A stretch of 64,000 nt of DNA from Bugula neritina (lineage: Eukaryota; Animalia; Bryozoa): the NCBI GenBank assembly GCA_964035545.1, contig OZ037765.1:33789504-33853503 (forward strand). The letters are read 5' to 3'. Position 1 is the stretch's first letter, and every line of letters starts with the position of its first letter. Of the stretch, positions 22,266 to 57,708 are shown one piece after another. Position numbers and translations under genes: made by a program. The notes below the pieces were generated by a model that saw only the letters and a program-made list of their open reading frames with translations, did no database searches and had not been told where the DNA came from.

Positions 22266-25200
22266 CCTTAGCACAGGCTGCAATTATCAGAACATCGAAC
22301 TATATACGCATTGTAGATTATACAATATAATGTATATTTATTGTACATTATTGTAATATATATTATATTGTGCATCGCAACATTTGATTATATAACATAA
22401 GTTATATACCTTATTACCAAACACTTAGTAGATTCAACAACACATCTTGTGCCGTTGCAAAAAGCTCATTGAAAATAAATAGAATAAAATTAAATGACTG
22501 AAATATATATGTGTTACAATAAGAAGTTTATTGGCTGGGACACAACAGAAAGAATTTAGAGTTTACAATAATAACTGAGGTCATCAATTCATCACCACAA
22601 ATACTTTAAAAGCTACTTTTCTAGAGTTGCTAGTTAATTATTGAAAACTCACAACTATTTATTGATTGGTTAATATTTTATCATAGTGATGAGAAGCATT
22701 CAATGAAATATTTGAGTGTTAACAGAGTATACTTCGAATATCCCTGCAGTTTGAATATAATGACATCATGGTAGAGTTTCAAGACGTCCATAAACCATAT
22801 ATATAATGTATTAACAAATTACAACTTCAAAGAAACTGGCACAATAGACCACAGAATCATAACTAAATTATAACTTAACTAAATTTCAATATGTCTTTCT
22901 ATTTTTTATTCCTAAACTGAATGATTTAAAACTATCAATCGATAATTATTTACTAGAAATTAACCAAGCTGTTTTACAAGTACAATGCTGTAGTTACTTT
23001 CGTTCGAATCACTGAAATGCTGATTTATTTGAAAAACGGAGAATATTTTTATGAATTATTCACCAGAAACTGAAAATTCAACTTGAATAGTAAAAAGATC
23101 AGTTATAGGAATTTTAACATACGTTGGTATCAAATTAGTCTAAACTTTCTTAAAATGTTTTATTCGGAATTATATGCAATTTTATCAACTAAATTGACAT
23201 TGAAATTTTTATTGGTTGCATTTGAATCAAAATAATCATTGAAAAAACTATAATAACACACTGAATTACACTTAGTATAATTTATAATTCTAAATTATTA
23301 CAACAGATATAAGTATAACTCTATGACTACACAATCAAAAGTATAACATAAACTAAAATAGTAGAAAAATAAAACTACCTAAATTATAATTAATCAACAC
23401 AAACAAGCTAAAACTTTACTTTTGTAATCCAGTTTAATCTTGAGTGTGAAGTTTCACAGTTGGAAATTTATTACTATAATTTACTTTTTACCTATCAAAT
23501 AAAAATATTATTGCTAATGATCATTATTATATAACCTTAAATGATAATGTTAGTGATTTAGTTCAACATTATCAACAGCATTCAGTTACAGTGCAACTTA
23601 CACAGTCAATGTTACTGTCACTATGAATATGAGTAAAAGTAAGTATGAGTTACAGTACAATTTACGTTATCATTATCATCATGATGATCAATAAAAATAA
23701 ACATATCAAATTTGTATGATAAACAGCAGCAATACTATCATGAGTAGCGTCACACAGTCACAGTCTGAGTGACTATCAGGAGAAAGACAAAAACCTGACT
23801 AGGATAACGCTACTGGTAGTGGTAGCCATAGTATAACTATAAGTATTACATTTACTATTAGTATTACTATTAGTGTTACTATTATTAATACAAATATACT
23901 TACTGACACTAATGCCAATAGTAACAGTAAATGTAATACTCATAATTCATAGTGATAGTCATATTGAATTTGATATTAATATTCATATTGAATTATTCAA
24001 AACAAATATGACTGTCCACTATCTATCACTGCCAGTGATGATCATATTCATCATTTTATATTCTGACATGTTCATGTTGATGATCATAATGATAATGAAT
24101 ATGATACCCATATTATTATTCATTAATTGCTAGTATTATATTATGAATATCATAATAATTGTTGATATTATAATTAGGCCTTATACTTATACTTAGTCTT
24201 ACAGTTACTCTTATAGTTATACTCATAGTTACTAAATCTAATAGTGATAGTTATACAGTTAAACTTAATGTTATAGTTACCACTCGCTACTACTAGTACT
24301 TGTAGTAGTAGTACTACTACTACTACTAGTACTACAGTACAAGTACTAATACTACTAGGGAAGGAAGATAAAGTTCTATGATTACATATGAAAACTCATG
24401 ATTTCAAACAAAATCCCAACATTCAATTTCATTCGTAACAAAACTTCTTTTGTCAAAGTCTTGTCAACCTTGTAATGACATTGACAATTGACCTAGCTAA
24501 GTTACCTAATTAAGCGTTTCCTATAGTTTGAGCGTGCAACATCTTTAAAACAAAGTTGATTAGAAACTGGGTTATATAACAGGAGTTATCTTCCACTAAA
24601 TGTAACGATTCGCGTCTGTTGCAGCCTGCAGGTCTTTAAGCAGACCGCAATACTGTGGAATATAGACCATTGAAGAGCTTTAGAAACTAGCGTCTTTGAT
24701 GATAAAACTCATGAAAACAAATGAATAATGCAGTCAAACCTTCCAGCTGTTTAAACACTTAGGAAGCTTCACATCTGTTTCAGCTGTTTTACTAACTGCA
24801 TGACTACTTGCCTTTTTAAGTGCCTATAATCTATAAAAAAAAACCATTGCCCCAGAGTAATGTTTTCGATTCATGGTAAATAATAAAGAATTGATTTTGT
24901 GAGTAACTATGTTCATTACAGTTAACTGTTATAAGTTTTGCTGTTCTCAAAAGTAAAATTTTTTTATACACATTATTTTCCTAGCTGGATTATTTCCCAA
25001 GATCGCTAGCTTTCATAAGAATCCATTTTACCAAAGTCTAATTTTAATTTGATTAAAAATAAAGTTTAATTCAATCGAACGTGACTGAAATATTGTTAAG
25101 ATAAGCCTTTCAATATAATCAAAACAGCTCAAGACTTTTTGCCTACATAGTATGTACTTAATGCCCTTTGAGTTTCTTTAGAGCTTCACGTCATGGCTGT

Positions 25201-31957: not shown

Positions 31958-34900
31958 TCATTCTGAACTTTGCTGTCCATTGAACTTGGGGAAAAAGAAA
32001 AGTTTTCGAAAGTGGGTTAAAGTGCATTCTGGGCGGTTAGGTACGTTACAGCCAACTCTTGTGTTCCTTTTCTTTTGGAAGTACGAGATACTGACTGTTC
32101 TCACCCTGTCTTGTATCTGTGAATAATTTATAGTAACGGGAACTATATGAAGCTGTAAGTGTATTAAATTTGTTTCTCCATCAAGTATTGGATGAGCTTG
32201 AAGACTATTAGCAAATCAATGAAGCTGCAAACATCTAATAGAAATATTCAGGGAAAAGATATCTTTTAGAAACTAAAACTAATTACTAGATGTTTAAACT
32301 GAACTTATTTTTCTACTAGTTTATTGAATATCATACAGTATACACAGTGGATGAGCTAAAGTCAATTTTACAAACAAATAGATTATAAGAGCGACAGCAC
32401 TTACTATTTTGAACAGTTCATCTATATCTCTGTGACAGCTGTGTTTGTAGAATATAGCCACTAGTATTCTGATAAACCAGGTACCATACTTAAGGTGTCT
32501 GCCTGTCGTGTAGTCTGCAACAGGAAAGATAAATACAATATTCAAAGTACTATACTCAAAGTACTATACTCAAAGTATCGTACTCAAAGTGTCATACTCA
32601 AAGTGTCATACTCAAAGTATCATACTCAAAGTATCATACTCAAAGTATCATACTCAAAGTGTCATACTCAAAATATCATACTCAAAGTGTCATACTCAAA
32701 GTGTCATACTCAAAGTATCATACTCAAAGTACTATACTCAAAGTATCATACTCAAAGTATCATACTCAAAGTATCATACTCAAAGTATCATACTCAAAGT
32801 GTCATACTCAAAGTATCATACTCAAAGTATCATACTCAAAGTGTCATACTCAAAGTATTATACTCAAAGTATCATACTCAAAGTGTCATACTCAAAGTGT
32901 CATACTCAAAGTGTCATACTCAAAGTATCATACTCAAAGCAATCTTCCACAAAATAGATTATAATACTTCCTACATACTCTCTGTACTTGGCTTCACAAT
33001 GTAGAAGTCATCAGCATCTAGGTGAGTGAATCTATCAAAGTGAATATTTGGAGACGCATGTTGACCTGCAGGAGACTCAATCCCAGCTGTTGCTGAAGAT
33101 GAGGGTAACGGGTCGGTAGTTGGTGGTGAGATGGTGGCTGAACTTTGTGACTGTACAGCATTCCCAGGATCCACAGCAGCTAAAATTCAAAGGAGCAAAT
33201 TTTTGCCAGATTTCCCTGTTACACTATTTACAAGGAGTTCCTGGACATATACCGATTTAGAGAAAGAGCAGACATGTTTTTGTATAATTCCTAGTGGCTG
33301 CTGCAAAGTGATGCAGGTAAGTATAAGTTGATATTCTCATTTAGTAGTCATATTGCATGTGGTAATAAGAATCAATGACTACAAAGGTTTCACCAATAGC
33401 ATGATATAAAACTGTTATTGTCAAGGCTAACTATGGATGGGATATATACATTGTGATAAAACTGTCAAAGCTAAGTCACTCACTGCCAGAACAAGCCTGA
33501 AGAATGATGAGTTTGGGTTTTCCTCTCATGGCAGGGAATTTACTAGCAGAGAGTAAATCTTTGACGACTGACAAGTTGACAGGTTTAAGGTATTTGTCAT
33601 GGAAGATGTTTCCAGAAGTTCCGTGTGACATGATGACTAGAATGAACATGTCCAGATGCTGGTGGTCTCTGTGGGTGGTCTCTTTCCTCACTTCTGATAA
33701 TATTTCCTGTATAAATTATCTCAGGAATATTTTTATCAATCATTGATTTATGTTGCCTATTTTACACATGTCTTCCTTTGAAATGTGAAAAGAGTTATGA
33801 TTTTAGGTTGACCTATATCAACGAATATATATAGTTAGTTCATATACAAAAATAATGAAATACTCACTTCTCTGGTCAAATCAAACCACGGCCTCTCTCC
33901 TCCGGCAATAACAAACCCCATATCTTTGAACAAGGTACTAATGTTCTCGTAGTCAATACCAGAACCATGTCGGGTCATCCCAGTTATTTCACCTCCACTA
34001 TCTCGATAGAATCGTCCGTTGTTTATGATCATGGCGCGTCCTCTAACAGGGTCACTCATTTTGTACACCTGTAATCACAAATTTATTGCCATCTTTTAAG
34101 TATCACACAAAACTTTTTCAATAATGTTTAATAGCAATTCTTATGGAAGGATAACTAAATATGAATGACTATGTAAGTAATAAAAATAGTTAACAATAGT
34201 AGAAGTGTCTCACCTTTCTCTGCTCATTGAAAAGCTGCGTAATTTCCTTATTAGTTGTGGGCTTCAGTTTCATACCATTCATGTGAGCAATCAGAGGTTG
34301 AAGGTCACTTTGAGTAAAGTCAGCATATCCTTCCTCTTCCACATCAGAACATTCACTGATGTCATCATCTTCACATGAGGTTGAGACAGGCTGAGCAAAG
34401 CGCATCTTTTTTGCTGGTACTTCTAGTTCTAGAAAACAATACTCTCTGATGATAACATCTTGGAAGTAAAATGGTTCTGTAAATCGTGTAAGTGTTTGAA
34501 ACACAAAATAATTTTCGATGATATATTATCTCAGTATTGAATAATTAAATAATATCCTGTGACAGCTTATGCCAACTAAAACCATATATTATTGAGCTAG
34601 CACAGATTTATTGAATTGATCAGAACAGAAATTATGCAACTCCAGGGGGAACACTATTTAGGACTTATAGCAGTTAAAAATCTACTTGTGTTTATTGTAT
34701 AGTAATTGATGAGAAACCTTCAATGAGTGTGATATTGTTATCACAGTTCTCAAGTAAGGTAAAACTTGTTGGTTTATTACATTGCATTATGAATTAATAC
34801 GTGATTTACACAGCTAAAATATTTATAATGATTATATTGGAATAAAATATATTATACATATATATTACAGTTAATAAATAAGGATTACACTGTCTTCTAA

Positions 34901-37900
34901 TTATTATAATTTACATACCAGGAACACAGGATGCAATAAAAATCTCACCAGTTTTCAAAAGTTCAGCAACAAACTTCTTCAAATTTTCAGCTTCTTCCTT
35001 AGCCAATGACTCACCTATTGACACCAGATTAAATCAATGTGTATGAGACATTTAGAGAGGAGTAGATTATTGGAAAAACATTATAATAAACTCAGACGGA
35101 AACATAGACTCACATGGGTAGAGTAGAGCACTTGGGATCTCCTCACCATCACACAGAGTTGTTGAAGATCCACTACACAGTCTGGGACTTGGTCTGGGAT
35201 GTTTCAAGGTACGAAGACACCACGGAGGATTCAGCACTTTCTTAGGGCAAGGAAGTCCTAGCAGAAGGCAGTGAGCACAGTAGCATGTAGTGACTGGTCT
35301 AGTTGCTGTCCAAGTTTCTAGAATATGTTTAAGGATGTTGTTGTTGGTGGTGACGAGTCTCTCCCACATTCTGCTAATGTTGGCAGCATTAGATGACACG
35401 TAGAGTAACACCTTTCTAGATTTGTAGTCGTGTACCAGCTGTGTGTAGATTCCATCTTGATAGACATTGGCTCCGTTTTTCTTCACTTTCATCACAGCAA
35501 ACTCATCCGGAAACAGCTCTAGCAAGCCAACCGTCATTTGCTGGTAGACGTAGTGTGGCAGAGCGAGGCCATTGAACTGTGTTTCAACTTGAAGGAGCAG
35601 GTTTTGTGAGTGAGAGTAGGAAGTGCTGTAAGAACTTTTGGCAAACTGTGGGACAACAAAACATGGCTTTCCAGAGTTGACATGTACAGGACCATACAAC
35701 AACCGGAATGTCTGGAGCAAGCAGATAGCAACTTCAACATTCTCAGAACTGTGAAATATTGTTTTATTTTGAATCAAATAGACAAGAAGAGATTGCATCA
35801 TCAAGCCAGTGTCTGTGAAATGAGTAACAGATTCCTCAATGTCCTGCTTCTGAACAGGCATCCCATCCTCTGAATAGCACGGCCTAAACTTGTCATTTCT
35901 ACTCTGCCATACGTTAGGATCATGATGATACAAGACACAGAGAAGTTTGGTAACTTCTGAAATCTTGTGGAATATGTATGGCCGGAGAGAGCTGATCTCT
36001 TTATACCACAAGACTTTGCCGCAGTCATGCATGTATGTGAGGATTATGTCCAGCTGACGTGACTCAATTTGTTGAAGTTCGGTTCGCACGTATTTCAGTA
36101 TCTCATCAAAGGTACTGTACACAGAGGGGATAGATAGCACCTTTTCATTCACTTCTTCCCAAACCAAAGGTAAAGATTTCACAAAATGTTGACTGCTTTG
36201 AAGAAGGGACTCCTTGATCAGGTCAAACACTTCATACTTATCATCTTTCCCCACCTCATAAATGTCCTCACCAAGAAAGACTCTTCCAGTTGACTCACTG
36301 AAATGTTTGATTTGAGCAAAATCTCCACCCAATGCTTTCTCTTCCCTAATCATCTCCTCACACAGCTGATTGGAAGTTTCTAGAAAGTTCTTTTGGAGTT
36401 TCTGAAATTCCGCATTTTGAAACTTATCTTTATGTGTGAAGATAAGTTTTAGAGCACCCAGAGTTGGGTTAGCCAGATAGAGGTGAGACATGTAATCAAA
36501 GGCTAATCTTCTAACAGCTTCTCTGTGTGTTGATTTACTTGAAATCTCATCATACTGTTCCATGTTGACTACTATGACTGGAATGCAGTTCTGTCTCAGT
36601 GTCAGTTGATAAGTAATATGGTAGACCTCCTGGCCTCCCATATCAATGACACAGAGTACTGTACCATCCACCTCCACTTCTTCAACATTAAACACCTTTG
36701 TTGTCTCATCTCTCACAGCATCTGGCCCTCTGTTGGTCAGAACTCTCTTTCTGTCAGCATTCTGTAATGTTCTGATTAGACTGGTTTTTCCAGCCATCGT
36801 ATTACCCAGCACAGCTATAGTAGCAAATGGTAGACTTCTACCAGCACCTTTAGCCAAATCTGTGTAGTATTGTCTCACAGCACCTACTCCTCTCTCACAT
36901 ACTTCTGGTGGAGGAGATGTGAGAGCATTACAATAATCTACATTCAGTGTACGAAGTCGAGTTAGCTGTAGTATCTCAGGATCTAAGGATGTCATGGAGG
37001 AATTGAAGGATATATCCAGTTCCTGCAGTCTACTCAGTGTGTACACAGGAGATGGTAAACTGGTGAACTTATTTGATGATATGCCCAGTTTCTCTAACTT
37101 CTGTAGACTCTGCATGCTGTTAAATAACATACATAATAGGATATATAATAAGGAATATGACACATATAACATACACACTGTAGAAGAGAGTGCACATAGA
37201 TAATCAAATGATATAGTATTATACATGCTTTTCTTATTTGACATCAGCTTTTCTGACAAATACTTCAGTGCATGCAGGAAGTACTTCAAGTTACTTGGTT
37301 GACTGTCAGGTCAAGGTGGACAATTACTGCTAATTCCTTCTATTTAAACATTTTTCTATATTATCTAAAAGATTTTCATCTCATGGAGAAAAAACTATTG
37401 AAGACAGCTTTCACAGCCTAGTTGGCAACCTCAGAAATCATTACTAGGTTCCATGCAATTATTTTTGAACAGAACTTATAGCAGCTAGTATAATTGGATA
37501 TCAATTTCTGCAGATGTATACTTTATGCAGTAATTAGCTCATTTTCCTTGTTGAGGGATAATTCTTAATGGGGTGAACTTGCTAATAGGTCCATCATATT
37601 AATAGATAACAAAAGCCTAACCCCTTGTTCACACATTGCCGCATCGTAAACCGTAACAGCACAAACAAAATGGCGCCACTGTTACATTTTGTCAACGGGT
37701 GTTCACACATTGACGCAAAGTACAACGCTTGACGCTGAATTGTGACCAATCATAATGAGGTTAATTTTTGTCTGCAGTGACTTGGATATTATTTACAAAT
37801 TATTCGAAACATTCTTATCAAAAGATGTTATATAAATGATATTGACTAGATAAAAGGAAGTACACATGAAAAGAATCTCTCTTTTAAACATATTTGTTTT

Positions 37901-40900
37901 TAAAATAATTGTGCAAACTAATTCAAATAACGAATATTTAAGCTGTCCAAATCATTTCTAAGTGTTTGGTTTACGTGATTTTGTGATTAGAGAAAGCTAT
38001 ATTTTTAAGCTGATTTTAATTCAAACAAGCCGGATAAAAATTTTTTAATCTTTTAAAACTTTTGAATTAGTTGAATTAAATCAAAAATAAGCTATTAAAA
38101 TAAACTAGCGAAAACGTCCTTTAAATTTTAGTACCGTATCAACTCTACCCAATGGGAGCCCGCTGTGATTTTTCGAATAGAGCACTGCTTGATCAACGCA
38201 GCAGCGTATACTAGGGTACAATTCAGCCCGGATGTTAACAAAGATGGCGGATATTTGCTGTTACGGCGTACGGTGCGGCAATGTGTGAACAGGGGGTTAC
38301 TCCCCTGATGACACATTGTAATACAGTGGCCTATTGAATTGAATAGATAACAGGAGCCTTAAAGTGATGATGTAACTAAGGGTAGTGTGTGTGACATTTG
38401 CATGAACTGTTCTGGTAAATATCACACATAATAGAAAGTTGAATAAATATTTAAAAAGATGGCAGGAAACAAAATATCAGTATATCTATTCCGCTACAGG
38501 ACTTCATATAAAATATATAGTATATTGTCATCTGGCGAAAGTTATATGACTTCACTGTATCTTCTGTGATCATAATATAACATGCATGTCTTAGCAATCA
38601 CTGCCTTTTATCTTAACTGTGCATACTGTAGATAGTCAATGTATATCTATGCTAGCCTGCAGCTGACACAATCCAGCTATACATACTAACATAAGTTAGC
38701 TGAATGTACCACCTAAATAATAGCAGCACGTGGTACATGCAAGACAGCTCAGTCAATCAACACTCAACAACAACCAGTAGAGTTGAGTCACCACACAATA
38801 CAAAGTTACACCTTCTACTGATAGCTGGTCTAAGATCAGATAGCTGTGAGATAATAGACTTATATCCTTAGAGTAAACAGGTATTAGTACTGTACACACA
38901 GTAAGCTACAAACTCTGTAGCTGTCAACCAATAGAAATATCATCTCCTTAACCAATGAAAATGCAAAAAACAACTGAACAAACTGAACTGAGCAGCCTGC
39001 TGTTATAATCTAGTAAATCGACACTAAATACTAGCTAGTAGTATGAATAGTCACTAAATACTAGCTAACAGTATGAATAGTCACTAAATACTAGCTAGCA
39101 GTATGAATAGTCACTAAATACTAGCTAGCAGTATGAATAGTCACTAAATACTAGCTAGCAGTATGAATAGTCACTAAATACTAGCTAGCAGTATGAATAG
39201 TCACTAAATACTAGCTAGCAGTATGAATAGTCACTAAATACTAGCTAGCAGTATGAATAGTCACTAAATACTAGCTAGCAGTATGAATAGTCACTAAATA
39301 CTAGCTAGCAGTATGAATAGGTGGGAGTACTCTGTGTAGTGTGTATTCCTCTCACTTGCTTACCATGAGATATTATATTTATTACAGTATTATTCTACAC
39401 TATTATATAATACACACCTGTTTGGTAAAGTTGGCAGTTTACAGTCATTCATGTTCAACACTCTCAATGATTGTAAGGATGTGAATATATTGTCAAGTAG
39501 ACCTTTAGATAGCTTATTCTCTGATATATCCAATACCTCAAGATTCTCCAGTGAAGGTATGCTGTAACATAACATACAGGTATAAATACATTCTGTGAAG
39601 TTATAGAGTACAACTTACACGAGGATTAGTGTTATACGATTGTGTGCCAGTGTGGCTAGAGGAAAGAGAAGACAACACTATTGATAATAGTGAAGACTAT
39701 TTATATATTAGTACTCAATTTTACAGGTCAATACTTTATACCAGCTAAACATGGGATAATCATAGACTGAGTGAGCATTGATTAAGTTGGAAGTGATAAG
39801 TGAAGGTGTTGAATAAGTTGCAACTTCAACAGACTATCCCCAACTTGAGTGTTAACTGTAGAATCCTTTGCTATGTATGCAGACAGTTGCTGAGTTACTG
39901 ATGAGATATTATATATATTACAGTATTATTCTACACTATAATATAATACACACCTGTTTGGCAGAGTTGACAGTTTACAGCGTCTCATGTTCAACTCTCT
40001 CAATGATAGTAAGGATGTGAATATATTGTCAGGTAGATCTTCAGATAGGATATTCCCTGACATATTCAATACCTCAAGATTCTTCAGTGAAGATATGCTG
40101 TAACATAACATACAGGTATAGAAACACTCTGTAGCTCATACATACAAAGTGTGATAACAGAGTTTTAGAATATTATTATGACTCTGTATTTCTACCATCT
40201 AACCTCTAGACAACCTTGGGCATAGCAGTTGTATTATGAGTAACTATGAGGGGATAACTACTATGATGAAGAAGTAGAAAGCTCACGTTATATATAACCT
40301 AGGAACTAGTAAATCATAGACTGAGAATAAACGTAGTCAGGTAGCAGTGACTGAAAGAGTAATTAGTAAAAGTTTGAATGAGTTTTGTTTGAGCTGCAGA
40401 GTTCCTATGGCAGAGGCGGACAGAGGGCTCCATAGGGCCACTTGTGACCCTTTGCCCATTTTTCAGTGGCCCTTTTAATGCTTAAGATAAGTAAAAACTG
40501 CCATTGTTATTTTGATTAGCAGAGCAGATGTTTGGTGACAAATTACTTTATTATAATAAAGTTTATTATGTGTACAATCATGTGGCCCTTCATTTTGGCT
40601 GACCTCTGAACTTGGCCCTCGAGCAAAATAAGTTGCCCACTGCTTATGATAGGACAGTAGTATGAGAGACAGTTTAGGTTAGATTAGAGAAAAGATAACT
40701 CTAATAAACATAGAAAGTAGTTTACTATATTATATCCTAAATAGAGGGGTTTCAAACATCCCTCTAGAGGAATTTGTATTTTAAAGTTGTCTCCCCCTAA
40801 AGGTATTGGGGGCAGTCTTCATAATATATAGAAGGCCCATAAAATAAGTAGAAATGTAAGGTTTGAGTGAAGACTACTACTAGTATAAGCTTCATTTTTT

Positions 40901-43670
40901 CTGAGATTAATATTTTGGCATAAGTACACATATGAGCAGTTTCAAAAAATTTTTAAAATTTTTTGTTAATGATAAATGGCACAAAAACAAAACTTCAAAT
41001 CATATTTGTGGTTTTGGTTATTGAGCAAATCTGAAGCTGGCAGCTGTCGCATTATTATTTGCTTTGTTGACTGTAACCAGTCTGTTTAGAGCTGCTAACC
41101 TTTCAACTCTTAGAACAATAATAACACGCTCGTACACTATATAGCTGCACTAGTGGGCTCTGTCTTACTGAACTCCAAATGCTCCAAATTATGGGTTGGA
41201 ACACATGCCTGTACGTTTATGAAGGCACTGGCTCATTTGTATTAACATGTTCACGTATACTTACACACCTATACTATGAAAATAACTAAGCCACCCTACT
41301 ATCTAATATTTCTATATATCAAAAAAATTATTATAAATATAAAGATATGTATTAAAATAGATAGATTAAATTTGTAATTTCAAACAACATCTTATCTAAA
41401 AATGCTAAACACTGTATAACTATATATATGTTTTAAAAGCATTTGTTTTCATGGCATGCCTGCAAGTCAATGAAAATATTTAGAGAACAGTAAAAAGAAG
41501 CATATAAATTTCCGAATAGTTTCTTTTTTTCTGAGATAAATATTTTGGAAATGTCCCACAATCCAACGTTTAAATTGAGTCTGTAAAAGAAATTTCACAG
41601 TGTATTTTCAATAAATAATTATTCTTGCAAGCTGTTAGTATACCAACATTACTAATACAGAAATGTTTTTGGAGCTGCAGAGTCCCTATATGGCAGGGGT
41701 GGGCAACTGGGCCCCCTAGGGCCACTTGTGGCCCTTTGCCAATTTTTCAGTGACCCTTTTAATGCTTAAGAGAAGCAACAACTGTCATTTTTATTCTGAT
41801 TAGCAGAGCATAGGTTTGGTGACAAATTACTTTATTATAATAAAGTTTATTATGTGTACAATCTTGTGGCCCTTTTTCTGGCTGACTTCTGATTTTGGCC
41901 CTTGTGCAAAAAGAGTTGCCCACTCCTGCCCAATGACATGACTGTAGTATGAGAGACAGTGCAGGTTAGATTATAGGAAATATAACTCTAATAAACATAG
42001 AAAGTAGTTTAATATATTATATCCTAAATACTAGCAAACTGTAGCCTGAGCACTGAATGAGTTGAAAGGCCAGTTAGCTCGTGTTTTAATGTCATTTTGA
42101 ATATTCTTGACTCTAGAGCAATAGCGGACAATGATCTTCAACCTGAGTGTAAAAATGTAGCGAGTACATTATAATACAACAACTACTTATTGGTAAAACT
42201 CTGAATAAGTTCAAGTCTCAACAGACCATCCTCACTTGAGTGTTAACTGTAGAAACCTTTGCTATGTATGCAGACAGTTGCTGATGAGATATTATATATA
42301 TATTACAGTATCATTCTACACTATAATATAATACACACCTGTTTGGTAGAGTTTGGAGTCTACAGTACCCCATCTTCAACTCTCTCAATGACAGTAAGGA
42401 TGTGAATATATTCTCAGGTAGACCTTCAGATAGGTTATTATGTGGTATATCCAATACCTCAAGATTCTTCAGTGAAGATATGCTGTAACCGCTGTAACAT
42501 AACACACAGGTATAGAAACACTCTGTAGCTCATACATACAAAGTATGAAAGCAGAGTTTTAAAATATTTTTATAACTCTGTATTTCTACCATCTAACCTA
42601 TAGACAACCTGCTGTTATAATATAATAGTCACTAAATACTAGCTAACAGTATGAATAGTCACTATATATTAGCTAGCAGTATGAATAGTCACTAAATACT
42701 AGTTAGCAGTATGAATAGTCACTAAATACTAGCTAGTAGTATGAATAGTCACTAAATACTAGCTAGTAGTATGAATAGTCACTAAATACTAGCTAGCAGT
42801 ATGAATAGTTATTAAATACTAACTAGCAGTATGAATAGTCACTAAATACTAGCTAGCAGTATGAATAGTTACTAAATACTAGCTAACAGTATGAATAGTC
42901 ACTAAATACTAGTTAGCAGTATGAATAGTCACTAAATACTAGCTAGTAGTATGAATAGTCACTAAATACTAGCTAGTAGTATGAATAGTCACTAAATACT
43001 AGCTAGCAGTATGAATAGTTATTAAATACTAACTAGCAGTATGAATAGTCACTAAATACTAGCTAGCAGTATGAATAGTTACTAAATACTAGCTAGCAGT
43101 ATGAATAGTCACTAAATACTAGCTAGTAGTATGAATAGTCACTAAATACTAGCTAGTAGTATGAATAGTCACTAAATACTAGCTAGTAGTATGAATAGTC
43201 ACTAAATACTAGCTAGCAGTATGAATAGTTATTAAATACTAACTAGCAGTATGAATAGTCACTAAATACTAGCTAGCAGTATGAATAGTTACTAAATACT
43301 AGCTAGCAGTATGAATAGTCACTAAATACTAGCTAGCAGTATGAATATAGTCACTAAATACTAGCTAGCAGTATGAACAGTCACTAAATACTAGCCGGTA
43401 GCATGAATAGGTGAGAGCACTCTGTGTAGTACATATTCCTCTCACTTGTTTATAATATTTTATTGGCAGCATATTTACATATTATATTTATTACAGTATC
43501 ATTCTATACTATAATATAATACACACCTGTTTGGTAGAGTTGACAGTTTACAGTTCCACATGTACAACTCTCTCAATGATAGTAAGGATGTGAATATATT
43601 GTCAGGTAGACCTTCAGATAGGATATTCCCTGATATACTCAATACCTCAAGATTCTTCAGTGAAGATATG
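31958..43670 (-). CDS. LRR-Roc-COR (ROCO) protein with C-terminal caspase domain, paralog A; start exon not found
   Basis: LRR exons 43527-43670, 42339-42482, 39954-40097, 39418-39561; exon 35114-37116 (LRRs, G1 GNTMAGKTS, G3 DMGGQ, G4 THKD, COR); linker exons about 34919/34949-35014 and about 34214-34430; caspase exons 33868-34068 (YKMSDPVRGRAMIINN..RHGS), 33482-33706 (IMSHG, GKPKLIILQACSG), about 32978-33179, about 32405-32514 (GRHLKYGTWFI), about 31958-32116 (TLTHFRKLFFFP). Phases are compatible. Confidence 0.88.
32542..32940. repeat. 14-bp minisatellite (CATACTCAAAGTAT)
   Basis: Tandem array inside a caspase-domain intron. Confidence 0.95.
37620..38297. mobile_element. MITE with TA target duplication
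   Basis: TIRs ACCCCTTGTTCACACATTGCCGCA / TGCGGCAATGTGTGAACAGGGGGT, flanked by TA on both sides. Confidence 0.75.
39020..39320. repeat. 30-bp minisatellite in LRR-cassette intron, copy 1
   Basis: Unit TAGTCACTAAATACTAGCTAGCAGTATGAA; same unit at 42626-43410. Confidence 0.95.
41694..41928. mobile_element. hAT-like MITE, with a degenerate duplicate at about 40410-40643
   Basis: Ends CAGGGGTGGGCAACT / AGTTGCCCACTCCTG; flanks are also duplicated (about 40390-40743 vs 41672-42030); no clean TSD. Confidence 0.6.
42626..43410. repeat. 30-bp minisatellite in LRR-cassette intron, copy 2
   Basis: Same unit as 39020-39320, in the same position relative to an LRR exon. Confidence 0.95.
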
Positions 43671-44225
43671 CTGTAACATAACATACAGGTATAGAAACAC
43701 TCTGTAGCTCATACATACAAAGTGTGATAACATAGTTTTATAATAATAATTATTATGACTCTGTATTTCTGCTGTCTAACCTCAAGACAACCTTGGGCAT
43801 AGCATTTTATGTTGTGTTAGTTGCAGTTATTATATCTATGCTGTAGAGGCTACACTCAGTTGAGGGCTAAAAACTACATCTTATATATATATACAGTATA
43901 TGACATCATACAGTTGCCATACATCATATGATTCATGCAGTAATAACCAACAACTCTATTGCCTTATGTAAACATTCAAAACATTACATAGCAGTTGCAT
44001 AATGAGAAACAATGAGGGGATAACTACTATGATGAAGAATTAGAAAACTCACTTGTGCCATTACTACCTGTGCCATTTTTACTGCGGTGCGATTTTTACC
44101 AGACACCGTATGCACTTTATTAACATACTCATACAGTTTCATTTTCTTGCTGAATATCGCTATGGGGGTGTTAAAGACCACACCATTATTTAGTCATGTT
44201 ACAGAAAGAACTTGGACTACTATAA

Positions 44226-47200
44226 GGGTCATTCCGTGTCAAATCAACCAAATTTCAGAAAGTCCCACGCCTTTGCGTCTCAGATTTTGTTCATATTTAC
44301 ACCAAATGGACCTACACATGTCTTGAGTGCTATTCTCAAATATTTCTGGCCTGGCACAAAAACTTTTTGAGAAATGAATATTTCCACGAACAAAGGTTGG
44401 GAAAAATTTTGAGGAAAATTTGCGATTTTTACTTTTAGACCAATTTGTAAACGCCCATATCTCCATTATTTTTCTAGACTGAGCCTTAAAATTTGGTGTG
44501 TGATTTGATTACACCTATCAATTTGCACTAGTAGTAACACATACTGCAGAATACTTTGTGTGCATATATGCTATGCTATTGAATATTGGCAATTTTTTAT
44601 GAATTTTGAAAAATTTCGAATATTTGCCACATCACAAAAGGCATTAATTTTTATTTTACTTCCATAAATTTTTATTCATAAATAGCTGATTATGGTTACT
44701 TTATACTCTTTAATTTGTGTAATTTTGAAAATAATATTTTCCGAGATATAGACACCCAAAGTGAAGAAAATGTGAAAATTCGCCCAACTTCACAAGGATG
44801 TAACCCGATGTTTGAATACAGTAAAATCTTTCAAACAAGTATTTTCTGTAACGTCATTTAGTGTATTTTGTAGATTCATAAATTTGGACGTCCTTATATT
44901 GTCCAAACTTGAAGCAAATCGCACGGAAAAATGGTATGCGTACGAAAATCGGCAAAATGCAATTTTTCAATGTAATATGTTGGGATCATACATTTTTATT
45001 ATTCATATTGTTCAAAATATCAAGTAGATACATATATGTTTCCTATATATGTCAAATCTACTGAAGATTACGATAAAATCTGATTTGTGTGTAATATCGT
45101 AAGAAAATTCTGCCGATCGGCATTATATGATATTCTCATTAGGTTTCAGAAAGCAATTGTTATCTGTGAGTGAATGGTATGAAACAGCTGAAATCTTGCT
45201 GTAATCAAGTACATTAAGTAGCTGAGGCAAGAGTAGCTTCAAAAAACATACCAAAATATAAAACCATGGCCCTGAACACAATAGATCTAATTTATTGCGG
45301 CTTTTGAAACAGATGTGCCTAAATATAGCAGATTGGTCCGCATCCTAATCAAGTTAGTAATTTGCCCAGGCTAAGAATAATTCATCATCCTGAAAAAAAT
45401 CTACAACTTTTTTTTTAAATGTGGAGAGAATGGTCTTCCAACTTTACCATCTGGTTCAAACAGAATTCCCTTTGCAGTTTTCTGGCTTGCTGGGCCAGGT
45501 AATTGTTTGCTCCAGATTCTATGGCTGTTCTATCGGTGGTCCAGCTTTTCGTGCTAATGTCAATAACTGGACCCTCTCTAGTCACAAGAAAACTTTCGCA
45601 TCCTTATTCAAGGATCAAGGATCATCAATTTGTTCAAATCTTTATGATTACTACGCTTCATACAGACATTTGTTACTTCTGGGTGGAGTTCTTCTTCATC
45701 TATGACAAAGACTGTTTCTACCTTTTCAGTAATGACCTCCTGCACTTTCTTTCGTTTTCTTTTCCTATAGCTCACTTTACTGGATGGGCTAATTTTTGCA
45801 ACTTTCAAGGAAGAAGCTCCCAATTCTGTCATTCCAGTGTTTAGTGTTTGTGCCTCCTTCTCAACTTTAAGAAATGCATCACTTTTAGTTTCCTGAGAGT
45901 ATTCTGAGAGCTCATCTTTTTTTAAAGCAATTAATATTGCACAGTTTCTCTCAGTTTCTACAGTTCAAAGGAATAGAATTATACTAGGAGAGCCCTAAAA
46001 TTTAGCCCTTCCAGTAAAGTGAACTATGGAAAAAAAACAAAATCAAGTGAAGGAGGTCATTGCTAAGAAGGTTTCCAAAGTTGCAAGTATAGAGGGAGAA
46101 GAGCTCCACCCAGAATCAACAAATGCCTGTATAAAGCCTAATAATCATAAAGATTTGAACATATTATTATGTTCCTTGAATAAGGTGAAAGTTTCTTTGG
46201 GACAAAAGAAGGTCCAGTTATTGACATTGGCACCAGAAAGGTGGACCATTGATAAGACCTCTATAAAATTTGGAGTAAACAATTATCGTTGTGTTTTAAG
46301 TTAGAGAAATAAATATTTATTATAGTAGCAGACTGAAAAAATAGCAACGTAAAAAAAGGTTATCTTTAGAGTTACCAGTTGCCAGTACAAGTGTGAAATG
46401 CAAGTCTGGATAAGAGAAAAACTGCTGGGTCTTTATAGTCGCTTAGTTAGCTTTTGTGTACTAGCTATAATGAAAATGGAAAAGCATAACAAGCTGAGAT
46501 GACATGTATTAGGAAAAAGCTTCCCCAGCTTATGTAAAAATCCAACAATTACCTTGCACAGCAAACCAGAAGACTGCAAAAGGAGTTCTGTCTGAACCAG
46601 ATATTAAAGTTGGAAGACCATTGCTTCCAGTTTTGAAAAAGAGAGTTGTAAATTTTTTCAGGATGATGAACATTGGACATGGCATGACGCCAATTACTTG
46701 ATTTTTTAACCAGTACTGACCAAATTAGGGCGAGGTTAGGGCCATTTTGCTATATTTAGGCACATCTGTTTCAAAAGCCACAATTATTTCCGGCATGTAT
46801 TAAACACCACTGTCATCGAATAAATTAGACCTATTGTGTTCAGGGCCATGGTTTTATATTTGGGTATGTTTTTTGAAGCTACTCTTGCCTCAGCTACTTA
46901 ATGTACTTGATTACAGCAAGATTTCAGCTGTTTCATACCATTCACTCACAGAAATAACAATTGCTATCTGAAACCTAATGGGAATATCATATAATGCCGA
47001 TCTGCAGAATTTTTCTTACGATATTACACACAAATCAGATTTTATCGTAATCTTCAGTAGATTTGACATATATAGGAAACATATATGTATCTACTTGATA
47101 TTTTGAACAATATGAATAATAAAAATGTATGATCCCAATATATTATATTGAAAAATTGCATTTTGCCGATTTTCGTACGCATACCATTTTTCCGTGCGAT

Positions 47201-47883
47201 TTACTTCAAGTTTGGACAATATAAGGACGTCCAAATTTATGAATCTACAAAATACACTAAATGACGTTACAGAAAATACTTGTTTGAAAGATTTTACTGT
47301 ATTCAAACATCGGGTTACATCCTTGTGAAGTTGGGCGAATTTTCACATTTTCTTCACTTTGGGTGTCTATATCTCGGAAAATATTATTTTCAAAATTACA
47401 CAAATTAAGGAGTATAAAGTAACCATAATCAACTATTTATGAATAAAAATTTATGGAAGTAAAATAAAAATTAATGCCTTTTGTGATGTGGCAAATATTC
47501 GAAATTTTTCAAAATTCATAAAAAATTGCCAATATTCAATGGCATAGCATATATGCACACAGAGTATTCTGCAGTATGTGTTACTACTAGTGCAAATTGA
47601 TAGGTGTTATCAAATCACACACCAAATTTTAAGGCTCAGTCTAGAAAAATAATGGAGATATGGGCGTTTACAAATTGGTCTAAAAGTAAAAATCGCAAAT
47701 TTTCCTCAAAATTTTTCCCAACCTTTGTTCGTGAAAATATTCATTTCTCAAAAAGTTTTTGTGCCAGGCCAGAAATATTTAAAAATAGCACTCAAGACAT
47801 GTGTAGGTCCATTTGGTGTAAATATGAACAAAATCTGAGACGCAAAGGCGTGGGCCATTGGTTGAGTTGACACGGAATGACCC
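44226..47883. mobile_element. Sola2-like DNA transposon, non-autonomous, TIRs over 1 kb
   Basis: Ends GGGTCATTCCGTGTCAA / TTGACACGGAATGACCC; 4-bp TSD ATAA; arms about 44226-45335 and 46750-47883; internal transposase-like remnants (KVQLLTLAPERWTIDK..FGV, FFQDDE) in both orientations. Confidence 0.78.
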
Positions 47884-50800
47884 ATAAATAACTAGAAACA
47901 AGCTACTCTGTCTACCAGAAGAAGAGATATATAATAGACCATGTAAAACTCAGCCAATCAGCAAAGTGTACCAGGTCAATGTTCTACCATTATAACTGAT
48001 ATAAAATTCTGCAAGTTCAATTGCAAAATGCATGCTTCTAAAAGCTAGTTGTGCAACTTTTTTTTCATGCATTATTTAATTTCATATCTTAAGTTGATGA
48101 CTCTTGAAACTATTTTTTAAAATGTCTAAATTAAGTGTTTATAAAATGCAATTAAAAATTGCATGTCTAAAAAATGACCTGGTACACTTTTGCAACTTAA
48201 GGCCAATTATTACATAACTGCCAGCTTAGTAGTTATTTGTTGTTGCAGCTTGAATGGGTTATTGTTTAGCATTGAAAGCTTGTAGCAAACATCTGTGAAT
48301 TTGGTACATGACTTTGATTGGCTGGTTTTTGAATGGCCCTTTAATATATGCATCTGGATGGCTGGGTAGTGTAGACTCCGCCTACATCTAGCTAATGTAC
48401 AGTAGCCAATCCACAGTAGTATTACAAAATTTCTGTTTAACAAATGAAATATTCTGGTCATTTGTTTTGTACTTTACAATAGTAAATATTCTATTCAACT
48501 GGAATTTTGTTGTATGTAAGCCATGGGAACTGCTAAGAGGTTAAATCAACCACCCATGCTGGTAATATTGTAGCTCGCAGTAATAGCAAGTCCACACCAT
48601 ATAAATATACACATCAGCTATTATGTGCAGCTTATGAATGCTGAAATGACCCCATTTTTTACCTTCAATTTGAAAAAATTGTATTACATATTCTGCCACT
48701 TCTGCACCAAGAATGTGTTTTCCTTTAAAATTTTGAAAATAGTAGTCAGTTTCTGCAGCAGTCAACTGCATCCACAATAAACAGCGTAAGCTTTCAAATA
48801 AACTATAAATATATGAAATATTAGTGTGGAAACAATGTAATTTATTTATTGCTATGATGAAAAATTACAAGAACATTATATAAAAGCTAGATATAGATTT
48901 CTATTAAAATGGCACAGGTAAAAATAACACATTTTTACTTCAAATTATAAATTTCATCAGTCACCAATGGTGGCTGTAGATTGCAGAGAGCACAGCAGAC
49001 TATCATAATCATAATCATTTGGGTTACCAACGCACTAAAGCATATAATGTAAGACGCACAAAAAACATTGGTTTTAATGAAACATGTAAAAGAAACGAAC
49101 AGAAAATGTTTTCAACAGAGTCAGCTGATATAGAGCAACAGAACTCATCTGACACCCATCCTCATAGTCAGACTTCATCAGAAGTAACTGAGTTACCAGA
49201 AACATCAACTACTCAGAAAAAAAGATCTGCACATTCTATTGATAGACGGAAATCAAAAGTTGGAAGAAAAAAGCAACTAATAAAAAAGTAAAAGTTTTTA
49301 AAACTTTCACTACTACAGATGAGCGAACTAAATTTCATACTGAAATACCTACACATTTTTTATACTTTTCTTTAGCAAGGTAAAAATTATTATTTTCTCA
49401 TTGCAAAGATATACTATGGTTTATTACAAATAAACAATGCAAGTCTCACTATGCTGAAATATGTACATTATTGATTAAGTTTGATGTGTATTAAAACTGT
49501 CATTTTAATTAAATTTGTTGCAGTGTGAGTGCATCATTCATACATTTTTTATTAAAAATTTTGTTTTATGTAAGAGATTCACAAATACCACAGTGGTCAT
49601 CTGTATGCTTTGACTTATTTAGTTCAGGGTTTTAATTAAACAAGCAGCAATCTTCTATTTGTGGACAAATTGACTCATTTTCTCCAGGAAAAGTAAATTG
49701 TTTTGACCTAAATTTTCCTTGGCTATTTTAAAGCTTATCAAAAATGGCCTCCTAATCTAATTATTAGCCGAAACTAACTTGGTGTTTAAAACTAAAATGG
49801 TTTACACTTGTTACTAGTTTCACTTACTCCCAAAATTATTAAATGCTATTCTAAAAATAATATGGGTTTGAATTAGTTATAGTATAATTATAAAATGAAG
49901 TAATTATTGTTTGTACACAGTATTTGTTTAAACTCATGACTTCATTCAAAGCATGTATTCATACAACTAGCTTATTATGTACTGTTACAGTATTACGTAA
50001 CACATGTTGACACACATTACATTCTGTTTGGATGGTGATATATTGGGTCAAGCCTTCAGCTAGCAGTTCTTGAACTTCATAGTTGTTGCAAAATATAACT
50101 GAAGCTACTTACCAGAGGGTAAAAACTGCTGAATGAATACAAACTAAGCACAAAATTTATTTAGCACATACATTATAATTTGAATCATAATTTAATTTTC
50201 TTTCTTTATTTACTATATTTAGATTTATATGTCCGAAGATGAAAGTTCTTACTCTCCGAAAAAAGTTAACAAGACAAGGTGAACTTTTATTGGCTTTGAT
50301 GAAGCTGCGTCAAGGTTTACAGTTTCAAATACTTGCTGACTTTTTTATATCTCTAGATTGCTAGCAAGCCAAACCTTCAAAGACACATTAGATATTTTAG
50401 CAAGAGAACTGAACAATCTAATATATTTTCCACCAAGAGAGAAGCTGAACATCCCTCTGAGCTTTCAAAGCCAATATGCTTACATTAGGTGCATTATAGA
50501 CTGCACAGAAATATATTCATTTGCAAGCCTCAATCAAAGCTGGCTCAATATTTAACATGGGGTGAGTATAAAAAGACCAACACCATCAAGTATTTGGTTG
50601 CAATTACACCCAGGGGCACTACCTGCTTTATTTCGCATGGAATGGGAGGTAGAGCCTCAGACAAGTGTGTAGTGAATGACTCTGGGTTCTTAGACTTCAT
50701 AAACCCAGGTGATGTGGTCATGGCAAATAGAGGCTTTCCTATTGAAGAAGAACTTATAGGCGCTGGAGCCAAGTTGGCCATACCACCTGGGAAAAGAGGC

Positions 50801-51111
50801 TATGGTGTGGTGGTTCGTGGAACTACCAGCAGCACAACATGTAGGGTCGCGTAATTGACCCGGAACAATGGATAGCCAATTAGCGTAGTTGATAGTTAGC
50901 AGCAATTGTAGTTTCCCGCTGCTAAGTCAGTCGAAGCTAGAGTGTGAAATAGATTAGATGTGTAACTTGTTTGGAAATAATGTATCGTTTTTGTAATGTA
51001 TAATTGTGTGTAAAATATACTCGTTCACTCGACTTATCCTGGTGCAGTTCTATAGTAAATAAATAGACTCTCTGGATAGCACATCAACCCTAAATCGGGA
51101 AATCATAACAG

Positions 51112-51129
51112 TGGTGGCAGCGGTGGGAT
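51112..51129 (+). promoter_or_regulatory. Primer binding site, tRNA-Leu
   Basis: TGGTGGCAGCGGTGGGAT is complementary to the 3' end of eukaryotic tRNA-Leu (...ATCCCACCGCTGCCACCA). Confidence 0.85.
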
Positions 51130-51141
51130 AGTGCATCCAAG

Positions 51142-52095
51142 ATGGAGACTGAAAATGCTGGAACTCAACCACCGGCAATCGAAGGTGAGCGTAGAGACAA
51201 TGCTGTAGAGACAATGCCTGTTAACCATGTAGTAGAAGAGCGAAGGGTTCCGCGAGAACTAGCTGAAGACCGCTACAGGTTAAAGGCGCCCACCTTCACG
51301 GGTGAAGAGGGGGTGGAACAATTTATCCAAGAGTTTAGCGACGTAATGGACGTCGCTCAGTGGCCCCCTAGGGTGGCCTTGCTGAAGCTTAGAATGGCAT
51401 TGATGGACAAAGCCAAGCCCTACGGGCTGGGTGTAGACATTGATAATATCTTTGCTTCTCTGCGGGCCCGCTTTGGCCTCTCTGCTACAGATGCCAGGGC
51501 CCGATTGCAGAGGTTGCGGCGTGATCCCCGCACCCCGCTGCGGGAGCATGCCGCCGCGGTCATGAAGCTGGCACAGATCGCGTACGGCGACTTGCCCCCA
51601 GTCAACCGCGAGAGGTACACCCTCGACGCTTTCATAGCATCTGTCGACGATCTGGGTCTCCACCACCAGTTTCTAGCTAGGGGAGTCACCACCGTTAAAG
51701 ATGCTCTGACTGAGGGGGAAGCTTACCTCCTAGCTAATCAAATGCATAAAAGTCGCGGAAGCTCCCGCCAAGTGGAGATAGACCGCGCAGACACGGCCGC
51801 GGGACAAGGGGAGGAAACCCCCGCCGCGGCTGCCGTGTCCCAGTTGGCGACGGCATCAAAAGTCACTCAACTGACGGACATGCTAGCCAAGCTGATAGCA
51901 ACACTGACACCACAAAACCCAGTGAGTACCGCCCCTGAGCCCATGCGGCCATCGGCGCCGCCACAGGGAGAAACAGTCAGTTTTTGCTGGGAGTGCGGAA
52001 ATCAAGGACATTTCCGCCGATATTGTCCCTTCCTAAATCAGGGGTTAAACTACCGCGGCCCGCAGATGTTCCCACCTTCCGCGGGCCGACGATGA
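51142..52095 (+). CDS. gag: Gypsy Gag
   Basis: 317-aa ORF after the PBS with a capsid-like region and CCHC knuckle CWECGNQGHFRRYC. Confidence 0.93.
   Translation: METENAGTQPPAIEGERRDNAVETMPVNHVVEERRVPRELAEDRYRLKAPTFTGEEGVEQFIQEFSDVMDVAQWPPRVALLKLRMALMDKAKPYGLGVDIDNIFASLRARFGLSATDARARLQRLRRDPRTPLREHAAAVMKLAQIAYGDLPPVNRERYTLDAFIASVDDLGLHHQFLARGVTTVKDALTEGEAYLLANQMHKSRGSSRQVEIDRADTAAGQGEETPAAAAVSQLATASKVTQLTDMLAKLIATLTPQNPVSTAPEPMRPSAPPQGETVSFCWECGNQGHFRRYCPFLNQGLNYRGPQMFPPSAGRR
52044..52088 (+). promoter_or_regulatory. -1 ribosomal frameshift signal
   Basis: G TTA AAC in the gag frame, 5-nt spacer, then hairpin CGGCCCGC...GCGGGCCG; pol lies in the -1 frame. Confidence 0.75.
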
Positions 52096-56615: not shown

Positions 56616-56920
56616 TTCAAACCATTTCACACATTCAGTATGTCTTACGACAACAGATCGTGGGGTGAGTTAACTATATCTTAATACGAAACTAGATCGC
56701 ATCGCTCAGCTCTGACTCACTGAGTCAATCGAGCTGGAGATAGGTTAGTGAAATACCGTAGTAAGAACTCTAGAGATTTTTATAATCTCATTGCAATACG
56801 TGTTCTATCTGACTATTCACTACCATTAATCTCTACGAGGTAACTGAATTAGGAGTTGCCAAGCTGCTCAAGCTGACAACACAGCAGTGTACTGTATTAA
56901 CACTGTTGAAACTTTTTCAG

Positions 56921-57708
56921 ATTACACTCGACCCGCTACAACCAGGGTACGGGATAGAACACTTCCCGCTCCGTATCCGGAGGAGTATGCTAGTGGGGAC
57001 AGGCCTGAGCCACTACGCCGCCGTTGGCGGTGGGTGTCTCCACAAACAGAGGAAGAAATAGAAACGGCCTGGGGGTCCAGAGGACGGACGAGATGCCAGA
57101 TCTGTGGTGAAGATTGCGCCTCTCACCGCTCCCTTAAACTACACGTCAATGCTCATCTCCTACTAACATTCTGCCCCTGCGGGTACAATGATGTGTATCC
57201 CTACCCCGTCACCAGACACCGAGCGGCGGGCTGTTTCCCTGGAGAAAACTATGTGGTCGACGCTAAGCTGTACCCGGAGTTCCTCACACTTATACGACCT
57301 CTGGTGAAGAAGGCCATGCTATTAGCCGTTCTGTCCTCGGGGTTCCAACGTGTGTTAGACAACGCCCGCCAACAATCCCCGTTGGTGTCTGACCGCCCGC
57401 AAATTACATACACCCCCGAGGAAACTACATATCCAGAAGAAGGAGAGATCTCCCCTACCCCGGCGAAGAGACGAACCAGGTCCCCCAGTCCACCCTTACG
57501 CCGCAGACGGACACCGTCCCCAGACCCAGTACGACTAGCCACAGTAGAAGAACGCCTCCTACGACTACAAGAAGAGTTCACCCAGCTGGCACCAGATCTA
57601 CTTAACACTACAACAGGACTCTTCCAGCTAAAAGGATCCGTATGCCGTATGAAACGGAAACTGCGTACATGCCAAGCCAAGCACCGACGTGCCCAACAAG
57701 GACTCTAG
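56921..57708 (+). CDS. Gypsy accessory ORF3: zinc finger, Arg/Ser/Pro-rich tract, coiled coil
   Basis: Long ORF between pol and the 3' LTR with CQIC-x12-HVNAH and CPCG..H..C motifs, RTRSPSPPLRRRRTPSP; preceded by acceptor TTTTTCAG; no Env-like signal peptide or TM segment. Confidence 0.75.

Follow-up and report, generated by a model that had tools for sequence, protein, structure and literature searches.

A 64,000-nucleotide stretch of the Bugula neritina genome (the window; contig OZ037765.1 of assembly GCA_964035545.1, forward-strand positions 33,789,504 to 33,853,503) carries on its minus strand, between window positions 43670 and 31958, a gene in which leucine-rich repeats (LRRs), a Roc GTPase, a COR domain and a caspase share a single reading frame. 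The gene comprises 12 exons with AG acceptors, GT donors and matching phases, the only stop being the terminal TGA; with the linker acceptor at 34428 the exons sum to 3754 nt, or ~1250 codons. The phase compatibility asserted in a preliminary description of this DNA therefore holds, and the one-chain LRR-Roc-COR-caspase reading frame is real at the exon level.

The exon order is LRR cassettes, Roc-COR, a 66-nt exon, a linker and a complete caspase. Each of the four LRR cassette exons is 144 nt long with phases 2-2: 43527-43670, which contains two 24-residue repeats and is the most 5' exon remaining, 42339-42482, 39954-40097 and 39418-39561. They are followed by an exon of 2003 nt (35114-37116) encoding the final LRRs, a hinge helix, the Roc GTPase with G1-G4 intact, COR-A and COR-B, and by the 66-nt exon (34949-35014), both of whose joints are found in RNA contigs and which encodes the helix following COR. 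The acidic linker exon (34214-34428) begins at the acceptor used in RNA, another in-frame AG lying at 34476. Caspase exon 1 (33868-34068) contributes the first S1-pocket arginine (RHGS) and caspase exon 2 (33484-33706) the catalytic histidine (SHG) and cysteine (QACSG). The intersubunit linker and the start of the small subunit (32979-33179) are placed by phases and an RNA joint, while splice sites and phases place both the small-subunit exon (32405-32514), with GTWF and the second S1 arginine (GRH, assigned by analogy with an alignment), and the final exon (31958-32116), with the small-subunit end and the stop.

Several of the introns contain repeats. A 30-bp minisatellite with a palindromic core occupies two LRR introns, at 39022-39320 (10 copies) and 42624-43410 (26 copies), where it could promote cassette gain and loss. 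A 14-bp array of 29 copies lies in a caspase intron (32538-32939), and an element of ~680 bp with inverted ends (~37620-38300) lies in the intron preceding the Roc exon.

Splicing between the two halves of the gene was followed in contigs from four runs belonging to four studies, taken as RNA by record or by guess, and the joint check covered the exons from the COR end (35114) to 33179. The joint 35114>35014 is present in all four runs, the joints 34949>34428, 34214>34068 and 33868>33706 in three runs each, and 33484>33179 in two; the two introns in 34526-34948 have no contig coverage in three runs. A single contig covers the COR end, the whole 66-nt exon and the linker exon as far as its end, and another passes from the linker into caspase exon 1. 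Both COR-linker-caspase junctions singled out in the preliminary description, 35114>35014 and 34214>34068, are thus seen in RNA contigs, and its concern that transcripts might end after the COR exon, at a stop present at 35067 if unspliced, was not borne out, as the RNA joints bypass that stop. Use of 34476 as the main linker acceptor is rejected, since RNA uses 34428. Two separate genes, a Roc-COR gene ending at 35067 and a caspase gene with its own promoter, are likewise rejected by the RNA joints, by the genome-wide pairing of the two halves (below) and by one-chain RefSeq models in another bryozoan, Watersipora subatra, which has 14 such Roc-COR plus caspase proteins, 12 of them with QACxG (e.g., XP_067947674 and XP_067948342). 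The RNA contigs are 90-99% alike to the gene, with variants that fit a mixture of paralogues (alleles or near paralogues); they prove the COR-caspase fusion for this subtype, not the expression of this copy.

Domain searches on the gene were run exon by exon, and the full-chain model is that of a Watersipora RefSeq relative. The Roc motifs are G1 GNTMAGKTS, G3 DMGGQ and G4 THKD, and Pfam Roc scores 29.9 bits on the 2003-nt exon against a cut-off of 27. The Pfam COR-A match is weak (E 0.006, below cut-off). The AlphaFold model of this exon (predicted local distance difference test, pLDDT, 91; predicted template modeling score, pTM, 0.88) matches the structures of LRRK1, the C. tepidum Roco and LRRK2 over ~670-710 columns with E values down to 2e-25, as well as the isolated COR structure 3dpt. 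Because the model matches Roc-COR structures, we regard the COR as real although the Pfam match is weak, and the protein has two features expected of a ROCO, a Roc with G1-G4 and a COR immediately following it. The COR also carries a conserved CxHC plus two more cysteines, a possible metal site.

In the back half, the SHG/QACSG exon matches Pfam Peptidase_C14 with 48.6 bits; the cassette exons match LRR families. The sequence features of family C14A are present: the SHG and QACSG dyad, the S1 Arg-Gln-Arg (RHGS, QACSG, GRH) and the p20 and p10 halves. The S1 register was taken from a caspase-3 alignment of a Watersipora relative, whose caspase, in its predicted model, matches caspase-3/8 structures. 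A Pfam scan of the linker exons found no CARD, DED or death domain between COR and caspase, and in the Watersipora full-chain model this region is a helix, ~50 disordered residues and two short helices. Nor does the protein have a NACHT or NB-ARC ATPase; its switch is the Roc GTPase. The earlier reading of an intact Roc, a COR, an acidic linker and a full caspase with both S1 arginines stands on motifs, Pfam and model, as does its adaptor-free layout on the Pfam scan and the disordered tether of the Watersipora model. By sequence and model features, the protein is a ROCO joined to a C14A caspase; it is neither an NLR (nucleotide-binding, LRR-containing receptor) nor a canonical initiator caspase, but it probably works like the two combined.

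This gene is one of many; the earlier single-locus account overlooked more than 70 members. In the 216-Mb, 321-contig assembly, a search with the Roc-COR exon yields 161 candidates; 66 of these are scored full-length matches, of which two contain a stop. The catalytic caspase exon has 134 matches and the LRR cassette 727 candidates. Pairing of the two halves, read by eye from the search listings, was evident for 62 of the 66 scored Roc-COR exons, which have a caspase exon on the same strand within ~6 kb downstream; in three more the distance is 10-16 kb, and one has none. Since random placement would give ~0.002 caspase exons per Roc-COR locus, this pairing is not due to chance. Six further pairs from another search bring the number to at least 71. 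All 30 near paralogues compared, and 75 of the 77 aligned relatives, retain an intact P-loop, and the ratio of nonsynonymous to synonymous differences per site (pN/pS) in Roc is 0.2. Bacterial contamination or recent transfer is ruled out by the introns, the chromosome-scale contig and the animal-type caspase. Small contigs of the assembly (C66, C101, C110, C160, C230 and others) carry small-GTPase genes that read through many TAA and TAG codons and look like ciliate-code DNA from an epibiont or contaminant.

An exon-by-exon scan of the same genome, whose counts are lower bounds, gave one weak partial match to NACHT and none to NB-ARC. The scan also gave three gasdermin N-terminal matches (G000:C2:2048552, 4286293 and 4312189); as substrates, gasdermins and executioner caspases are no more than candidates.

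The family is diversified at both ends. Mean entropy, taken over 27 LRR cassettes, is 1.72 bits at the twelve predicted ligand-face positions and 0.48 elsewhere, and none of 20000 permutations gave so high a value; pN is 0.32 at these positions compared with 0.09. Ligand-face pN is 1.5 times the all-site pS, yet equals the pS of the same codons, so that positive selection on the ligand face is suggested, not shown. At the other end, the caspases of the nearest paralogues fall into two classes that are ~33-47% alike, class A (SHG, QACSG) and class B (THG, EVCSG or ETCSG). The S1 glutamine is replaced by glutamate in class B, and in class A a glycine precedes the second S1 arginine. These substitutions would suit a role for many members as non-proteolytic scaffolds or decoys, with the caspase serving as a binding or inhibitory module in the manner of cFLIP, as would the several Watersipora models that stop before or inside the caspase; such a role is nonetheless very improbable, given that His and Cys are retained in all class A and B exons read and QACxG in 12 Watersipora models.

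Caspase class is not inherited with the front half of the gene. Over the first 1200 nt of the Roc-COR exon, likeness between classes equals that within classes, and between loci L008 (class A) and L009 (class B) nt 250-1000 show 97-98% identity. Site incompatibility in Roc-COR increases with distance (0 of 1000 permutations), and class A as a single clade on the Roc-COR tree is rejected (approximately unbiased, AU, test, p 2e-42). Together these results indicate that front and back halves have been exchanged by recombination or conversion. A COR segment at exon nt 1200-1600 (in the 35114-35915 region) shows 75-86% DNA identity between paralogues, its flanks being far less variable, and partly follows caspase class; it may be a dimer or caspase-contact surface. 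In sequence pattern, expansion, a hypervariable LRR face and module exchange are hallmarks of an immune-receptor family.

The copy in the window differs from its relatives in lacking a beginning. In relatives, the LRR cassettes are preceded by a conserved ATG exon with a phase-2 end; this exon has 66 matches in the genome and lies upstream of 28 of the 29 nearest paralogues. Neither tblastn, blastn nor the genome search found it between 43670 and the stop of the neighboring gene at ~60400, and as the first remaining LRR exon begins in phase 2 at 43670, the chain is without a start. ATG-GT candidates at ~44050-44140 were rejected as starts, being of phase 0 and lying within sequence that matches internal introns; the DNA directly upstream of 43670 matches LRR-to-LRR introns of paralogues. 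Into this intron a DNA element of 3.66 kb (44223-47886) has cleanly inserted, with 1.3-kb inverted arms (90% alike), a 4-base ATAA duplication and no Pfam-recognized open reading frame (ORF). Beyond it, ~50 bases of the same intron (47887-47935, minus strand; 87-96% to internal LRR introns of paralogues) are the final remnant of the gene. The place expected for further LRR exons, the ATG exon and the promoter is occupied by a Harbinger-like DNA transposon (47933-59532) with 1.1-kb inverted arms and a DDE_Tnp_4 piece, the far end of which adjoins the 3' flank of an upstream paralogue. Nested within it on the plus strand is a Gypsy-type long terminal repeat (LTR) retrotransposon (50804-58298) with identical 307-bp LTRs, a gag-like ORF (51142-52095) and an overlapping pol (51984-56615; protease, reverse transcriptase, RNase H and integrase); its third ORF (56887-57708) has no Pfam match. 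The upstream paralogue itself (60400-64000, minus strand) is represented by its 3' half, a COR end and a class B caspase (THG, ETCSG), and is 84% alike to the window gene in the Roc-COR exon and only ~40-43% in the caspase. Elsewhere in the window, exons of an NAA35/Mak10 (NatC subunit) gene lie amid tandem-repeat DNA at ~19400-22300 (minus strand).

This arrangement points to a probable recent, transposon-bounded loss of the promoter, the ATG exon and some LRR exons that would leave the copy a silent remnant; most likely it is silent or yields a shortened product. It could instead be functional, if the transposons mark a mis-join, nested repeats being difficult to assemble, if splicing in phase 2 from the upstream paralogue supplies its start, or if an internal methionine is used with a transposon promoter. 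In the read-through variant, the ATG and LRR exons of the upstream paralogue would feed this copy, the promoter choosing a class B or a class A caspase, and the frame would be kept because all LRR and Roc exons have a phase-2 start. The lack of stops and frameshifts in all 12 exons (3754 nt) and the intact state of every splice site fit a functional copy, but are also explained by a recent loss; the breakpoint is precise and bounded by transposons, and splicing by read-through would need to pass over an entire gene and ~23 kb, which leaves a functional copy somewhat doubtful. The question concerns this copy alone and does not compete with the mechanism of the family. If a remnant, the copy shows how a gene can die, through a transposon-bounded loss, in a cluster with fast turnover. 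Because it is without an ATG exon and probably not intact, it is a poor choice for experiments, for which intact paralogues, such as the sister near 34.00-34.01 Mb on the same contig, are preferable.

Initiator caspases are activated by proximity. Roco proteins alternate between two forms, a monomer with bound GTP and a dimer that carries GDP or no nucleotide (PMC6337361, PMC11052575), and since GTP drives monomerization in the best-studied Roco, the dimer is assigned to the GDP or empty state. Taken together, these two properties favor a model, to which we give an even chance, whereby ligand-driven COR dimerization activates the tethered caspase in intact members. At rest the protein would be cytosolic, monomeric and loaded with GTP. 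A ligand bound to the LRR face, or clustering there, would favor hydrolysis and COR-COR dimerization, and the COR dimer would bring together two caspase domains on their flexible acidic tethers, which could then activate in the manner of initiator caspases with no CARD or DED adaptor. The active caspases would cut Asp-site substrates (executioner caspases or the gasdermins of the genome), resulting in death of the infected or foreign-contacted cell. The whole would amount to an NLR inflammasome in one chain, with Roc-COR replacing NACHT.

A switch of opposite sign can also be envisaged, in which an autoinhibited COR dimer, or a closed LRR-Roc form, keeps the caspases of the resting protein separate or occluded, and GTP loading promoted by ligand opens the LRR-Roc hinge so that the freed caspases pair or oligomerize. 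GTP-bound CtRoco has been described as an active open monomer with a large hinge movement, and the long disordered tether, as modeled, would leave the dimer geometry unconstrained. However, monomerization takes away the obvious source of the proximity that initiator caspases need, and a leaky tethered caspase pair in a resting dimer would be dangerous; we consider this scheme unlikely. The trigger, rather than the switch, might differ: the same dimerization could serve colony allorecognition, or programmed polypide regression or metamorphosis. Bryozoans are listed among colonial animals with cell-death allo-incompatibility, and variable LRR faces suit self/non-self ligands equally well. Such a non-microbial trigger appears decidedly improbable, as the protein parts examined have no signal peptide or membrane segment, developmental death has no need of many variable sensors, and clusters dispersed on many contigs would seem to suit pathogen receptors better.

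Returning to ligand-driven COR dimerization as the preferred mechanism, we tentatively propose, as possible rather than probable, that cheilostomes have largely replaced NLRs by 70 to perhaps 130 combinatorial one-chain Roco-caspases in which the Roc-COR GTP cycle gates a death protease. The diversity of this repertoire would be the product of LRR exon cassettes, Roc-COR and caspase class. Several points weigh against the preferred mechanism and the receptor role of the family. Within their own codons the exposed LRR sites have a pN/pS of ~1.0, for which relaxed constraint is a possible cause; the case for an immune role is purely one of evolutionary pattern; the RNA contigs are short, none covering LRR to caspase and none being assignable to this copy; the scarcity of NACHT and NB-ARC comes from an exon-by-exon scan, which is able to miss split or divergent genes; and COR dimerization, transferred here by analogy, has been shown solely in distant Rocos of ~14% identity.

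If true, this replacement would be, for animals, a third way of building an intracellular immune receptor: dozens of variable one-chain sensor-caspases in a colonial animal that has almost no detectable NLRs would represent a solution until now predicted for bacteria only. The family would also be the simplest read-out so far of a Roc-COR switch controlling an effector. How the Roc-COR nucleotide cycle controls an effector is a long-open question for LRRK2, and a natural Roco with a dimerization-activated protease would offer a direct, binary read-out of monomer versus dimer.

The layout itself is not new. The preliminary description knew of no characterized protein with this architecture; we find no functional test of a Roco-caspase in the literature, but three earlier in silico accounts mention the layout (PMC8195603, PMC2575513, PMC11463336), so that the architecture was in part already described. 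The scale of the family, its cassette-type diversification and the exchange of caspase classes were found undescribed, and no description of a bryozoan Roco-caspase family was found in the literature covered, from which subscription papers are mostly absent. Among named organisms, the nearest relatives are those of Watersipora and a protein of B. neritina; the best-matching database proteins stem from one JGI sample, whose start exon agrees at 96% identity with a locus of this assembly. Beyond the Watersipora models, metagenome contigs with Roc-COR exons 35-52% identical also have caspase exons downstream. A 1028-aa ankyrin-repeat caspase (P0248, Logan) was a distant match.

For bacterial LRR-AP-GTPase-COR proteins, Kaur et al. 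(2021, PMC8195603) list at least 24 C-terminal effectors, a caspase being one of them. These systems share with the bryozoan family an identical domain order, fast-evolving N-terminal LRRs and several paralogues per genome, and the bryozoan proteins display the features by which AP-GTPase conflict systems are recognized: LRR, AP-GTPase, COR and effector, fast LRRs and paralogous copies. The bacterial systems, however, are predicted only, and their paralogues differ in the kind of effector; the bryozoan family, by contrast, keeps to a metazoan-type caspase that varies in class, and its LRR cassettes are based on introns. On the Roc-COR tree, in which metagenome rows are assumed to be bryozoan, the bryozoan sequences group on a long branch with animal Rocos, not with the sampled bacteria, none of which bears a caspase.

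Zhang et al. (2008, PMC2575513) suggested that amphioxus “LRRs-caspase” hybrids, an LRR array joined to a QACxG caspase as in the bryozoan proteins, connect recognition directly with apoptosis. That paper does not mention Roc-COR, and the identity of its model with XP_002614028 (BRAFLDRAFT_67388), which we find to be LRR-Roc-COR-A-COR-B-C14, is not confirmed. Unlike the bryozoan proteins, XP_002614028 has almost no tether, and its place on the Roc-COR tree is within a group of amphioxus Rocos that carry GT4 or OTU effectors. A shared origin of the two fusions is rejected, as a single amphioxus and bryozoan clade fails on this tree (AU p 6e-5, with the caveat of the long bryozoan branch); this points to separate fusions. 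Amphioxus LRR-Roc-COR proteins (P0139, P0171, P0152, P0178, P0254) have a GT4 glycosyltransferase, OTU protease, caspase or DEATH as effector, a variety that mirrors the variable-effector systems of bacteria.

In Owenia fusiformis, another lophotrochozoan, a caspase with a ROC-containing pro-domain has been noted (PMC11463336); it is a single sequence mentioned in passing, with no COR or LRR analysis found in the text covered and with bryozoans unsampled. The ROCO candidate immune receptors of brown algae (PMC11378527, PMC3341825) also have LRR-Roc-COR with LRRs on symmetric phase-2 exons, which shuffle and diversify. Their LRR exons are of 72 nt, compared with 144 nt in the bryozoan, and they are mostly effector-free, none having a caspase, although a few SAR (stramenopile, alveolate and rhizarian) Rocos end in a trypsin-like peptidase (PMC11378527, PMC3341825). 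MFHAS1, LRRK1, LRRK2 and the C. tepidum Roco share the LRR-Roc-COR core and fold, and RefSeq labels the Watersipora relatives “MFHAS1 homolog”; the bryozoan proteins differ in having a caspase instead of a kinase as effector, in forming a multigene family and in their ~14% identity. In functional logic, there is a parallel with NLR inflammasomes and the Apaf-1 apoptosome, in which a repeat sensor, a nucleotide switch and a proximity-activated caspase are likewise combined. The bryozoan protein dispenses with NACHT or NB-ARC and with CARD, PYD or DED, its caspase is covalently attached, and its switch would be a GTPase dimer, not an ATPase ring; the Roco-caspase is an analogue of the NLR inflammasome and apoptosome, not a member.

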